Positions 8,940 to 19,964 of a stretch of DNA of 64,000 nt are shown here, piece by piece. Under the pieces are notes generated by a model, which was not told where the DNA came from, made no database searches, and worked only from the letters and a program-made list of their open reading frames with translations. Numbering within the stretch: the stretch's first letter is position 1; each line of letters starts with the position of its first letter. The position numbers and the translations under genes are program-made. Source of the DNA: Mytilus trossulus (taxonomy: Eukaryota); the NCBI RefSeq assembly GCF_036588685.1, contig NC_086373.1, positions 34,410,001 to 34,474,000 of the forward strand, in the 5' to 3' direction.

Positions 8940-11900
8940 ATGACAACAAACATTATTGAAATTGAAACAAACATTAGTCAGTTGACAACTGAGTTGTCAG
9001 GGTTCTCACCAAGAATTTTTCATGGTGAGTCCTCTTTGAAATTCTCAGATCTGCAGTGACATCACAACATGTAACTGACCAAACAATGATTAGCATTTGT
9101 AACAGTCAATTTGTGTTATGTAAACAATACTGAGACTGAGAGGTGATGCCAATATAATTTTAACAGGTTTTGAATAATCACCAATTGGTGGATTTTACCT
9201 CAATTAACGTATAATCAACCAATTTACATATAAGGGTACAGACAGACCAATTGATGTATAATGCAAGTTTTTGTTATAAAATGCAGGGGCGGATCCAGCC
9301 ATTTTAAAAGGGGGGGGGGGGTCACACTCCAGGACAAAAAGGGGGGTCCAATTGCATCCTTCCCATTCAAATGCATTGACAGGGTTCTCACTAAGGCGAG
9401 TCCATGAGTCCTGGACTCATCAAAATCTGTTTGGACTCATCATTTCCAAAACTGGTGAGTCCACAGATGCATCAAGATTGAAATATTTTGTATAAACTGA
9501 ACACAATTAAACACAAATATCATCATTTTATAGTTTTAGTTTAAAAGAAATTTGAATTTTATTTCATTTCATTGCTGTAGTAGGCCATGGAGACTAAAAT
9601 ATCACATTATATTGCAGTGTTCCAGCTAGGTTTTCAAAAGGGCAGGGTGCCAATCCTGAAAAAGGGCATTTAACGCTCGTTATGATCATATGAAAAGCAG
9701 GGTTTGACACTAACATTAGAGGTGATGAAGTCCACAGGACTACCAAGAAAATTTTTTGGGTAGTCCTGGTAGTCCTCGTCTATCACCGGTGAGGGCCGCA
9801 ACGCGGCCCGAACTAGCTAGGGGGGTTTGGGGGCATGCCCCCCCACGAAAATTTTTGGAAATAAGATGCAATTTCCTGCCATCTGAGCACCCCAGAAGCA
9901 CACAAATGTTCATTTGAGTTTTGAAAATATTTGGGTTTTTTTTTCCAGATAAATTAAAGTTGACATTCAGTGAATAAATTTTATTACTCCTGAACTTTTC
10001 CTGTCAGAAAATATTGAAAAATTAAATGCAAAATCTGCAATCTGAGACAATTTCAAAGGCCTTGTTAGGTAGTGTTATTTCACCTTTTATTCCGGGATTA
10101 TTTAGAAAAAATAGGATAAAAATAAGGCCATAATAAATAATAGGTTTGTTTGCCCAAACGCTACCTACCCAGATAAAAGCTGCCTACTCTGTCTCAAATT
10201 CTTTTATTGTCCTGATTTGAAGAAGTTTTTTTTAATCAAATAGGCATGAAGACTAATAAACATCTAATACTTCAATTTCTTTAAAAAAAAAAAAAAAAAA
10301 AAAAATGCCCACCTACCTACCCACTGTCTCAACCTTAGGGTAGGGTTTGGGCAAACCAACTTAAATATTTTTATGTGTGGCCTAAGTCAATGTTTGAAGT
10401 TTTCATTAATGCTTCAAACAGTTTATAATTATTTTTTTTGTAGTGATACAATGTCTTTGTGTACTAGAGGTCAACTTCATCATCACTGTTGAAAGCAATT
10501 CAGTGGATATGTTGCTGAAACAAAATGTCTTTAATATTATTTTGAATGACATGTATGTAGGTTTTTTTAATAAGAAAGCCACCAAAAAAATATTGTTGCC
10601 TTTTTTTCCAAACTACCCCTTCCTGTTTATTTTTTTTAGGGGGATAATAATTTTTCATCCAAATTTGGGAAGTTATTTTTTTAACTCATCTACGTTTTTA
10701 TTGCTGACCTTTGCTGTCTATTCAGCAATTTCTTCACATTTTGGTTATCAGATATTTTTATTTACATTGAAAATCCTTTGTGTTACAAACACTGTGATGA
10801 TTCTGATCAGAAATCTGGATCTCAAAAGTGCTTTCATAATAACAATATTAAAATTACGTTCTTCCAAATGCCATCACTGTTTTTGAAGAATTTAAACATT
10901 ATTGGGAGGACTTTTATGCCAATCTTTAGCATTGAAATAGCCAGACCATATACAAATTTCCAGGTGGTCCACAGGACTACTGATTAACCATGTTTTGGTA
11001 GTCCTCCTAGATTTTAGGGGGGCACCGGACTACCGGACTACCGTTAGTGTCGAACCCTGAAAAGGGCATATTTTAATAAAAGATGTTAATCAAACATTTG
11101 TGTTTATTTGTTGAATCACAGGTTATACAAGAACAACATCATTAGCCGATATAGAACTCTTATCTTCTACTTTTAAGGCTGAAAAACTTGTCAAGCAGCT
11201 TGTCACACAAGTTTTTTGATCATTGCTTGACACAGTTGAACTTTATATGCAGTATGTTTTGAAAGGTGACCTGTTTCATACTGTTTCTATGGTATACCAC
11301 ATTTTATCAGTTTCACCTTTCTACCCCTGCTGTGCTTGATGGCAATACAGCACAAAACATCTGTGCTCAGGAAATTCACAATTTTAGGATATAAAGCAAC
11401 AGTGAAAAATTGTATCAAAAATAAAGAATACAGAAAAAGATGACCAAGGCACCCTACCAACACTGCTACTAAGACCCTCTTTAACTTTTCCCATAACTCA
11501 AAATAAATACCTAAACATATATATTCTTAAGCAAGAAGTATGGAGACATATTTTAGAATATGTAAATGGGTTACTCAATGCTAGGAAAAAAATCAGATTG
11601 AGTTATCTTTCTTTATTCGGGTGTGCTCCTTCTTTGGAGGATTATAAACAGTAAGTAAATATGATGTAAATATGATCACTATATGGCGGCTGATTTTGTT
11701 ATTTTCGTATCAAAAATGAAGGCAGTCAATGACAAATACGTCTGAATTTTCTGTTTAATTTTACGGAAAACAAGTAAAACAATGTCTTCAACGAGTTTAT
11801 TATGGTTTTCCAACTTTCTGTCATTACGTTTCCTCCATGAAACTACGGTAAACATCGCAAATTGTGCAAAAGTTGTTGTGTGCACAGTCTTCAAAGATAA

Positions 11901-17900: not shown

Positions 17901-19964
17901 TAACTTATAAATACAGATTTACAAGACTTTATCCTATCAATACAATAATGAGAGAATGAAATATACGTATTTCATTAAACTACGATATAAGAAAGTTGTC
18001 AACGTGGTGGGACATCGTATCTTTACATCTTTAATAATTTTGTGTAATTTGCCAAAAACTGCTATTAGAAATTGTAAACATTGAACTGGTTCCTCATCTT
18101 GTCTTAATATGAAGCCACTTCCTGTTGAAGACCTGCTTAAGCGGGAATATTTATAAAAGCGATATTTGGTTCCTAGACGTCCTTATGTGAGCTTTTAGTT
18201 AAATATTCCAAAAGATGTAAAAAGATAAATAAAGGCTTGAAATGCTATCGCATAGCTTAAGGTGAAATAGCTGTATATCGAAATGCATCCTGTACCTAAA
18301 TAGCTTGCTTGACTTTAAGGGTTTGTTTGGTTTATTGTACTGCTCTGCTTGATAGCCAGATACGATATGCCAAAGTGCTAGTGCGATGCCGTATTTATAC
18401 TTGATGGTGAAATACATCCGCGACTCACAGAACTGAAAATCTACTATAACTTTGAAATACTAAGGAAAACTCTGGCTCATGTCCCAAAATGTCGTTATAA
18501 ATACATAAAATCGCGAAAGTTTGCCTTTAATTCCAATAAATAAGTGACATCATAAATATAAACCTTAAAATTCCATACTCGTAGCCTTATCACCTACGTT
18601 ACTATATGACGTCATTGAAATCACAAAATAGTTCCTTAACGGCGCTACACAAAAACGTACTTAACATAATTATTTCCTATTATTAAATATCCTACACAGT
18701 AAAAGGAAGGCCAGCAAGTAATTTAATCATATCTTAATAATACTTTCATGTATTATTATAACTTTATAAAGAAGTACCGTTACCCGGAAGTGACCATTCG
18801 TTGGAATGGCAACTTCCAATATACGTAAACAAGCACTCGCCACGATGGAATTTAAGGGAAAACTACCCAAAAGAAGTGTCAAATAACACTGAGACTGAAT
18901 GAATAGGTAACGGCAAACATGTTTTATAAACCCATTATCCCCTAAAAGTGTGAATTTAATGTAGACCCATGAAAATCGTGATCGAAGTGCCTGTTCACTG
19001 ACAGTTGAATTTTACCGCTATGTCAACTTGATAAGTTGATAGATGTTAAATGTTATGTTATCTGATAAAATTGGTACTAATTATAAAAATGCAATTTGAT
19101 CTCCCCAAATTGAGATTGCCAAAGTTGTCTTAGTGTATGAAAATCATCTAAGACCATTATTTTTCAGGTTTTCAGATATTGATCCCAATAAAATTTAGAA
19201 ATATAAAATGAGTTGTTTCTTTGAGATTATTATCAATGCCCATTTATAACAATATGTTCTCTGAGGGACAATATTCCCCAATATTCATGCAACAACCCTT
19301 TTATTGTATTGCAATATAAAATTTGAAAGTAAAAATTGATTTAAACTAAGATGTTGTCGTTTGAAGATTTATTGCACTAGTTGAATATTGAAATTTATTG
19401 GAATTTATTTCACGCTAACCTTTAGTTACTTTCTGTGAGAAATATTATATTGCTATGCAATAATACAAAGCATTTTTCTGTTTTTCAGAAATAAAAAAAG
19501 AAGGAAGAACCAGTCCAAACCGGACAAAGTTCAGAAAACTTTCCAGAGAGGTTTGTGGAGAAGTATGTGATATTCCAGAAAACAACTCAGTCATTTTCGT
19601 TTATGAAAAGCGACCTTCCAAAGTATCCCTCATAGGTGAAATAAGTTACCAGTTTTGTGACTTAAAGATGGATTCACCTGGCAGTAACTTTGACAGCGAA
19701 TTCTATAGTCAGATAACATTCATGTTTGTAAAAGAAGATTTCCAATTACAAGGAATTGGTAAAAAGTTGGTGAAAAAAGTATTGAATGAGTTCAAAAGTC
19801 ATGATAAAAGTAGACCAATCAGAATTCAAAGTGCAGGTCGTGCTGTAGGATTCTTTGAAAAATTGGGATTTGTTAAAGTTGGAGATATCATGGAAACAGT
19901 TTGTGGTATTTCAGTATTTAGATTCATGCAGAACATGGAACGACCAATACCATCGCCAACATGA
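8940..19964 (+). CDS. Predicted chimeric gene: tankyrase-derived ankyrin repeat cluster fused to a GNAT acetyltransferase (about 394 aa)
   Basis: Exons 8940-9024 (tentative), 14141-14220, 14799-14950, 15231-15297, 16123-16221, 17227-17452 and 19489-19964. All GT-AG with intron phases 1,0,2,0,0,1. Total 1185 nt, open to a TGA. Confidence 0.65.
9698..11059. mobile_element. MITE D (hAT-like) inserted in C
   Basis: TIR CAGGGTTTGACACTAAC / GTTAGTGTCGAACCCTG; TSD AAAAG at 9693-9697 and 11060-11064; subterminal GGACTAC/GTAGTCC repeats. Confidence 0.88.
10126..10382. mobile_element. MITE E (PIF/Harbinger-like) inserted in D
   Basis: Imperfect TIR GGCCA...GTTTGCCCAAAC / GTTTGGGCAAAC...TGGCC; TAA on both flanks. 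Confidence 0.78.
13300..13995. mobile_element. HINE/Helentron-like element fragment
   Basis: Ends with caggtgagcgacacaggctcttaagagcctcaagtttt (sub-terminal repeat, GGCTCT/AGAGCC hairpin, T-run). The left boundary is approximate. Confidence 0.55.
14141..17452 (+). CDS. Five tankyrase-like ankyrin exons (ARC4 plus the start of ARC5); partial tankyrase duplicate
   Basis: [26 protein letters not shown] / [51 protein letters not shown] / [22 protein letters not shown] / [33 protein letters not shown] / [43 protein letters not shown]...[18 protein letters not shown]. Colinear with tankyrase ARC4. No other tankyrase exons seen in the window. Confidence 0.93.
14559..14713. mobile_element. MITE related to family A, in an ankyrin intron
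   Basis: Degenerate TIR CAGTGGTGGATACAG / CTAAATCCTCCCATG; TSD TTTTC at 14554-14558 and 14714-14718. Confidence 0.7.
16290..16495 (-). mobile_element. SINE 3' fragment
   Basis: Reverse complement of the 790-1000 repeat. Confidence 0.7.
17550..19465. mobile_element. Non-autonomous DNA element with a long inverted repeat plus tail (Crypton-like architecture)
   Basis: A 35-bp inverted repeat, AGGGTTGTTGCATGAATATTGGGGAATATTGTCCC (17560-17594, reverse complement at 19265-19299), then a tail of about 165 bp. GCAATAATA direct repeat at 17550-17558 and 19457-19465. Family assignment is tentative. Confidence 0.65.
19489..19964 (+). CDS. GNAT-family N-acetyltransferase domain, terminal exon
   Basis: Acceptor tttttctgtttttcag ends at 19488. 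Frame (E)[64 protein letters not shown]... with acetyl-CoA motif A ([17 protein letters not shown]) and motif B ([10 protein letters not shown]). Confidence 0.85.

Follow-up and report, generated by a model that had tools for sequence, protein, structure and literature searches.

The gene described here lies in a stretch of 64,000 nucleotides of Mytilus trossulus DNA (assembly GCF_036588685.1, contig NC_086373.1, positions 34,410,001 to 34,474,000; G000:C1:34410001-34474000 in our numbering), which is called the window below and to which all positions without a contig name refer. At 8940-19964, seven exons on the + strand, joined by canonical splice sites, encode a predicted protein in which a short leader is followed by the fourth ankyrin repeat cluster (ARC4) of tankyrase, a stub of ARC5 and a complete GNAT acetyltransferase domain. 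The gene is almost certainly a young chimera of the Mytilus edulis species complex that originated by exon shuffling. A previous interpretation made from the letters alone (the sequence-only reading) had proposed such an ARC4-GNAT gene with one open frame of about 394 aa. The exons sum to 1185 nt, corresponding to 394 codons and one terminal stop, and the joined frame is identical, residue for residue, to the RefSeq protein XP_063442168.1 of M. trossulus ("tankyrase-1-like isoform X1", 394 aa). The parts of the gene are as follows, residue numbers being those of the equivalent positions in human TNKS2.

8940-9024, + strand: exon 1; ATG at 8940, 28 codons and 1 nt, phase-1 donor CATG/GTGAGT
14141-14220, + strand: exon 2; first helix of ARC4, entered in phase 1
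14799-14950, + strand: exon 3; ARC4, with equivalents of D521, R525, S527, F532 (V), G535, Y536 and D556
15231-15297, + strand: exon 4; ARC4, with equivalents of L560, H564, N565, S568, Y569 and H571
16123-16221, + strand: exon 5; arginine cradle of ARC4, with equivalents of D589, W591, F593, E598 and K604
17227-17452, + strand: exon 6; end of ARC4 and a 39-residue ARC5 stub, ending in phase 1 (17452/GT)
17453-19488, + strand: last intron; GT..AG, acceptor AG at 19487-88
19489-19964, + strand: exon 7; phase-1 start, complete GNAT domain of 157 aa, stop codon at 19962-64
19965-20307, at least, + strand: 3' untranslated region; contigs of sequencing runs reach about 295-307 nt past 20000 without a joint
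13992-17452, + strand: copied tankyrase DNA segment; five exons with their introns, 3.46 kb here and about 2.07 kb in the parent

Domain architecture, public records and transcripts

Exons 2-6 were assigned to Ank families by Pfam. In exon 6, the first 42 residues correspond to the C terminus of the construct crystallized for human TNKS2 ARC4 (3TWQ, 1.6e-29) and the second half to ARC5 of TNKS1 (5GP7, 3e-24); residues 29-197 of the fused protein match the TNKS2 ARC4 crystal chains with an E-value of 4e-76. The proposal that five exons encode ARC4 and the start of ARC5 was in this way reproduced by direct reading, Pfam and the structure matches, and the same holds for the phase-1 end of the last ankyrin exon and the acceptor at 19488 that opens the phase-1 GNAT exon. 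In the latter exon the first in-frame start codon does not occur before residue 60 of 157, and the exon therefore needs upstream coding exons.

The GNAT domain was recognized by three Pfam families, namely Acetyltransf_10 (50.4 bits with a cut-off of 23.6, E-value 2.7e-13), Acetyltransf_7 (38.5 bits, cut-off 27, 1.5e-9) and Acetyltransf_1 (35.0 bits, cut-off 20.7, 1.9e-8). Motif A is intact (QLQGIGKKL, exon residues 85-93), with G88 and G90 near-invariant or invariant in a 34-sequence family alignment, and the FFEKLGF sequence is also present. When exon 7 was modelled on its own with AlphaFold2, a predicted local distance difference test score (pLDDT) of 95.6 was obtained, while a full-length model based on a three-sequence alignment had a pLDDT of 47 and carries no information on how the domains are placed with respect to each other. 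Foldseek matched the exon 7 model with a probability of 1.0 to PaiA, RimI, Naa50 and ElaA, and SpeG was also matched, all at 12-18 % identity; there were 319 PDB structure matches at E<=0.001, and those listed are all GNATs. Pfam, motif A and fold agree on a full GNAT domain, as had been read from the QxxGxG and FFEKLGF sequences. The GNAT fold has its first strand from exon residue 2 onward, which leaves the ARC5 stub as the sole connection between ARC4 and the transferase, with a probable role as linker.

Only Ank and GNAT families were found by Pfam in the 394-aa protein, which has neither a PARP (PF00644) nor a SAM domain (PF00536/PF07647); the SAM domains were found in the tankyrase fragments compared, unlike in the fused protein. 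Within the window no PF00644 match was obtained, and tblastn with the fused protein revealed no further ankyrin or tankyrase exon there, in agreement with the view that no other tankyrase exons lie near the gene. Of the five clusters of a tankyrase (ARC1-5), the protein has one, ARC4, and a 39-residue piece of another, ARC5. Since PARP, SAM and the set of five ARCs are all lacking, the fused protein is not a tankyrase.

Fused orthologues have been annotated in M. galloprovincialis (e.g. XP_076104461.1, A0A8B6G317) and M. edulis (e.g. XP_071121212.1, A0A8S3PQB1), and M. trossulus has an isoform X2 (XP_063442175.1) next to the isoform X1 mentioned above. A word-index search combined with cluster look-ups showed that RefSeq and UniProt call the fused protein tankyrase, TNKS or tankyrase-1-like in the three Mytilus species. 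These names are misleading because the protein has no PARP domain and cannot poly(ADP-ribosyl)ate (PARylate), and they are flagged here as an annotation error. The sequence-only reading knew of no described ARC-GNAT protein. Full-text literature searches indeed returned no paper on such a fusion of an ARC or of ankyrin repeats with a GNAT, and none on tankyrase-like genes of Mytilus, but the proteins were already present in RefSeq and UniProt. The gene model is thus public and automatically named; its reading as a chimera is new.

Expression was followed in public sequencing runs. A run search with 14100-20000 yielded 23 runs that contain 20-30 % of the words sampled, a fraction close to what the exons occupy in this stretch, and the contigs of four of the public runs (X1-X4, from four studies and with two organism labels) were aligned to it. 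The GT..AG joint 14220>14799 was seen in contigs of three runs (X2, X3 and X4), and the joints 14950>15231, 15297>16123 and 16221>17227 were seen in all four. The key joint 17452>19489, which ties exon 7 with its GNAT domain to the final ankyrin exon, was likewise present in X1 to X4. The contigs spanning it contain 51-63 nt of exon 6 on their short side, including letters of the copy that are absent from the parental tankyrase gene described below, and extend past the stop codon by about 300 nt. The form recovered across the GNAT acceptor was the fused one in every run. In transcripts, splicing therefore joins the ARC4 block in frame with the GNAT exon, as expected if this is a single gene, and one of the two junctions that the sequence-only reading had singled out for checking has been found under both organism labels.

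An alternative is that the fusion is an artefact, either of misassembly or of read-through from a tankyrase fragment (pseudogene) into an unrelated GNAT gene. No support for it was found, apart from the circumstance that the identity of the runs as RNA is a guess, and it is considered highly improbable: the joint 17452>19489 occurs in four runs with copy-specific letters on its upstream side, the same architecture was predicted independently in the assemblies of three species, and the GNAT exon lacks an early in-frame start. Misassembly and two-gene read-through were rejected on the joints, the copy-specific letters and the three-species architecture.

The contigs break near 17400, the site of a 39-nt stretch identical in copy and parent, where breaks are expected in de Bruijn assembly because of that identity. 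Parent-like contigs with about 12 % mismatches occur beside the copy contigs in the same runs, the copy-specific ones having approximately three times the depth, although depth is a weak measure. Contigs of parental tankyrase mRNA align to the copied exons at about 88 % identity, for example with the joint 15297>16134 and the inserted sequence CATGGAGCCTG, and the records with 20 mismatches over 17225-17396 are also contigs of this mRNA. Short-read quantification of either the copy or the parental tankyrase must tell the two apart. The exon 7 variants listed among the four runs comprise seven synonymous and five nonsynonymous ones.

Origin of the ankyrin block and surroundings of the gene

A second genomic match of exon 6 is located at G000:C4:74534844-74535065 on the minus strand, with 86 % identity. 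It is followed, 7.7 kb downstream and on the same strand, by a PARP exon and preceded by ankyrin exons as far as 23 kb upstream, which identifies this locus as the intact parental tankyrase gene. Residues 29-197 of the fused protein are 89 % identical to the parental exons at the amino acid level and 91 % at the nucleotide level. Using blastn, collinear blocks between the window and the parental locus were found at 13992-14311, 14740-15307, 16017-16254, 16534-16643 and 17120-17447; they are 82-88 % identical, intron sequence included, and span 2.07 kb in the parent. The five exons have equal lengths and splice sites in copy and parent. Because the introns were copied as well, the segment must have moved as genomic DNA and not as a retrocopy. 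At its downstream end the parental donor GCAG/GTAAAT has been kept behind a 6-nt in-frame insertion, and homology ends a few bases into the intron.

The inserted block comprises 624 nt (208 codons) and is entered and left in phase 1, while exon 1 ends and exon 7 starts in that same phase. A phase 1-1 block thus entered a phase-1 intron, by which the reading frame was kept. The acceptor was a small GNAT gene with two exons, and it was in its one intron, of phase 1, that the tankyrase block landed. In the 1.3-Gb assembly the GNAT exon occurs once. Stand-alone relatives, the search for which had been suggested together with that for the parental tankyrase, are known from M. coruscus (A0A6J8CTN4 / CAC5399081.1; 163 aa, 88.6 % identical over exon 7 and starting with MSTKI+E+IKREERT) and from Lottia gigantea (V3ZVB2; 168 aa), and transcript-sized Logan contigs also encode the stand-alone form. 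Exon 1 of the fused gene starts with MTTNI (MSTKI in one M. edulis record), and its first five codons match the MSTKI of M. coruscus. From this similarity we infer that exon 1 is the old first exon of the GNAT gene, read through to a new downstream donor. Within exon 1, at 8949-8990, M. trossulus carries a 21-nt in-frame insertion relative to M. galloprovincialis and M. edulis (IIEIETN; ACAAACATT repeated).

In the records searched, the fusion is confined to the M. edulis species complex. Among the 98 relatives of the GNAT exon that were obtained with phmmer from 1.84 billion representatives, only the Mytilus cluster has the ankyrin block; the others are mostly 120-200 aa in size and a few are longer. 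Conversely, GNAT domains were found in Mytilus clusters only among the best 120 of 892 ARC4-like proteins (217-690 aa). Copy and parent differ by 0.23-0.27 synonymous substitutions per synonymous site (dS), and their intron distances (0.05-0.22) are close to this value.

The introns of the gene are rich in repeats. Contig depth runs into the thousands in all four runs at 14494-14690, 15479-16069, 16267-16660 and 19222-19465, stretches that are highly repeated and transcribed, and repeated elements in the introns explain why the copied segment, 2.07 kb long in the parent, measures 3.46 kb here. Within the last intron, an element of 1740 nt is flanked at both ends by inverted repeats of 35 nt that match perfectly (17560-17594 and 19265-19299). 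As contig depth amounts to hundreds to thousands at both arms, this element belongs to an abundant family resembling terminal inverted repeat elements or miniature inverted-repeat transposable elements (TIR/MITE-like). Without it, the tankyrase donor would lie about 300 nt from the GNAT acceptor. Upstream, a repeat of about 500 bp at 13329-13996 has many copies, some in tandem, and occurs within the parental tankyrase locus too. It ends in the 14-nt palindrome GGCTCTTAAGAGCC (13973-13986), where the copied tankyrase DNA begins (13992). The palindrome at the start of the copy hints at transposon-mediated (Helitron-like) capture of the tankyrase segment, against which counts that no matching repeat element was found beside the parental segment. 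The 3' untranslated region runs into short tandem repeats at 20134-20400, with spacings of 68 and 80 nt.

On the upstream side, an open reading frame on the minus strand (8263-8553) is positioned head to head with exon 1, the start codons being about 390 bp apart, an arrangement that suggests a bidirectional promoter. This short first exon, which had been labelled MAPK15, gave no match in Pfam. The carbonic anhydrase gene expected downstream was recovered on the minus strand with PF00194 exons at 27917-28090, 31346-31516 and 31880-32038, and more carbonic anhydrase exons are present past the window at G000:C1:34504333-34521180.

Constraint, peptide pocket and possible function

Four of the five ARCs of tankyrase bind peptides (PMC6439159). 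For ARC4 of TNKS2, 18 residues binding the tankyrase-binding motif (TBM) have been listed (PMC6911004): the arginine cradle (D589, W591, F593 and E598), the glycine sandwich (G535, Y536 and Y569), a central patch (D521, R525, S527, F532, D556, L560, H564, N565 and S568), plus H571 and K604 as C-terminal contacts. With the residue offset set by the 3TWR alignment, 17 of these were found to be identical in the fused protein, which by its residues would count as a TBM-binding ARC. The one exception is F532, which is replaced by V; the equivalent position is occupied by L in ARC2 of TNKS1. All 18 positions, including this V, are invariant in five orthologous sequences from three species.

The ARC4 core and the GNAT domain are under purifying selection. 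The dN/dS ratio (nonsynonymous to synonymous substitutions per site) of the copy against the parent, which the sequence-only reading had wanted to see determined, is 0.2-0.33 (dN 0.06); taken separately, the ARC4 core has a ratio of 0.19-0.22 and the ARC5 stub one of 0.42-0.51. Between M. trossulus and M. edulis or M. galloprovincialis, exon 1 changes fastest, with a protein divergence of 30-50 %, whereas the values are 9-10 % for ARC4, 22-32 % for the stub and 6-8 % for the GNAT domain. These regional differences reveal a graded constraint, which is strongest in the GNAT domain, weaker in ARC4 and near-absent in the leader and the stub. According to a simulation, 205 codons would have stayed free of stop codons under neutrality with a probability of about 5 % or less at branch lengths of at least 0.115 substitutions per site, lengths that are realistic in our judgement. 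Joining transcripts have been found, the ankyrin block is neither broken nor evolving at a dN/dS near 1, and a misassembly of the locus is highly improbable, so that none of the observations that would have spoken against the sequence-only reading was made.

As a whole, the data are explained best by a shuffled ARC4-GNAT chimera that would dock and acetylate, an explanation to which we give slightly better than even credence. The mechanism itself is put forward tentatively, as one possibility suggested by the retained residues. The ARC4 module would still bind RxxxxG tankyrase-binding motifs, binding would bring an acetyl-CoA-dependent transferase to the RxxxxG proteins, and tankyrase clients could in this way become acyl acceptors. 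Of what the sequence-only reading had proposed or wanted to see checked, the single gene, its in-frame splicing, the tankyrase parent, the stand-alone GNAT relatives and purifying selection stand; docking on clients, their acetylation and competition with tankyrase are deductions from conserved residues. A more far-reaching proposal is that the M. edulis complex has rewired the tankyrase recognition code, such that Axin-type and other RxxxxG clients would be acetylated, with lineage-specific cross-talk with, or antagonism of, PARylation-dependent degradation; the event would be seen here within a few million years of the birth of the gene. This is, on the sequences at hand, more doubtful still.

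A number of observations weigh against the explanation favoured above, a chimera with docking and acetylation. The four runs are guessed to be RNA, the spliced joints in their contigs being the argument for it, and the joint 9024>14141 is predicted by RefSeq gene models, those for M. trossulus and M. galloprovincialis. The pocket is not conserved to a statistically stronger degree than the remainder of ARC4: by our estimate there is one change in 18 positions against about two expected, and the p-value for 0 of 18 positions being variable among the orthologues is about 0.05. The loop between D521 and R525 contains a 2-residue indel at about 14840-14850 (CRDLKLNGRH versus CRDLDGRH, LKLN for LD), with the LKLN insertion present in some M. 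edulis and M. galloprovincialis records (P0100, P0113 and P0118 versus P0111 and P0114). The indel is perhaps a polymorphism, and one that could change the peptide pocket. At the positions that can be polarised with human TNKS2, by means of alignments and the human sequence, most replacements probably fall on the branch of the copy, the dN/dS of which would then be about 0.4-0.55, relaxed but not neutral. Fast protein divergence between very close species also fits relaxed constraint. Lastly, the nearest structures of the GNAT domain, at 12-18 % identity, include polyamine, N-terminal and small-molecule acetyltransferases, and NCBIfam gave sub-threshold generic matches for the GNAT exon and no specific family. 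A PDB sequence search with the exon produced marginal matches only (PaiA, 0.005) and the protein atlas placed it in generic GNAT clusters; none of the PDB, NCBIfam and atlas searches named a substrate.

Several of these points would also be expected if the insertion were a recent, near-neutral accident that has been tolerated, the ankyrin block being an inert N-terminal extension, in slow decay, of a protein with only its ancestral GNAT function. The restriction of the fusion to one species complex, the 9-10 % divergence of ARC4 among very close species, the almost free evolution of the ARC5 stub and exon 1, a copy-branch dN/dS that may be about 0.5 and the indel in the pocket loop of some records all fit such a course of events. 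It is nevertheless rather unlikely in view of the 208 inserted codons, which are open in three species against the 5 % or less estimated for neutrality, the dN/dS of 0.19-0.22 in the ARC4 core, which is well under that of the stub, the invariance of 18 of 18 pocket positions among orthologues and the recovery of a fused contig across the acceptor in four of four runs.

The retained binding pocket is equally compatible with a role as a decoy or competitor, in which ARC4 binds clients and shields them from PARylation and later degradation, or tethers them, while the GNAT domain keeps its ancestral, possibly small-molecule, substrate. Without SAM and PARP domains binding cannot lead to PARylation, the transferase is a generic small GNAT with polyamine and small-molecule enzymes among its nearest structures, and the roughly threefold depth of copy contigs over parent-like ones, a weak measure, points the same way. 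A pure decoy, however, needs no constrained GNAT domain, yet this is the slowest-evolving part of the protein (6-8 %), and almost no linker separates the ARC5 stub from the first GNAT strand. This explanation is given about the same low probability as the tolerated insertion; it is compatible with docking followed by acetylation, and the two do not exclude each other. Shielding by a decoy and a tolerated accident both fit the data nearly as well as docking plus acetylation does.

If ARC4 of the chimera still binds the motif, the reader of one modification system has been moved onto the writer of another, a natural experiment that would also provide a tool to ask what tankyrase docking does without PARylation. 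Whatever its function, the gene is a clean and datable case of exon shuffling, of which the donor, the acceptor, both breakpoint regions, the phase, the lineage and the expression are visible.

Comparison with known systems

The fused protein resembles the tankyrases (TNKS/TNKS2, PARP5a/b; 3TWR, 3TWQ) in that its residues 29-197 are a recent copy of ARC4 of the species' own tankyrase. Unlike these enzymes, it lacks ARC1-3, the SAM domain for polymerisation and the PARP domain for catalysis, and it cannot PARylate. Its C-terminal 157 residues are orthologous to the stand-alone molluscan GNATs, with which it has in common motif A and a family-specific motif in the N-terminal helix, NRxKFRxLSREVxGE; it differs from them by the addition of 208 tankyrase-derived codons and by a lengthened first exon.

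Drosophila jingwei is a young chimeric gene that arose by exon shuffling, and shuffled modules follow a rule of phase compatibility, by which 1-1 exon sets are placed in phase-1 introns. The Mytilus gene agrees with young exon-shuffled chimeras such as jingwei in the insertion of a module into the intron of another gene, the 1-1 phase, the restriction to one lineage and the fast protein evolution that followed. It differs from them in that the donor moved as genomic DNA with its introns and in that the donated module is the peptide-recognition domain of a signalling enzyme.

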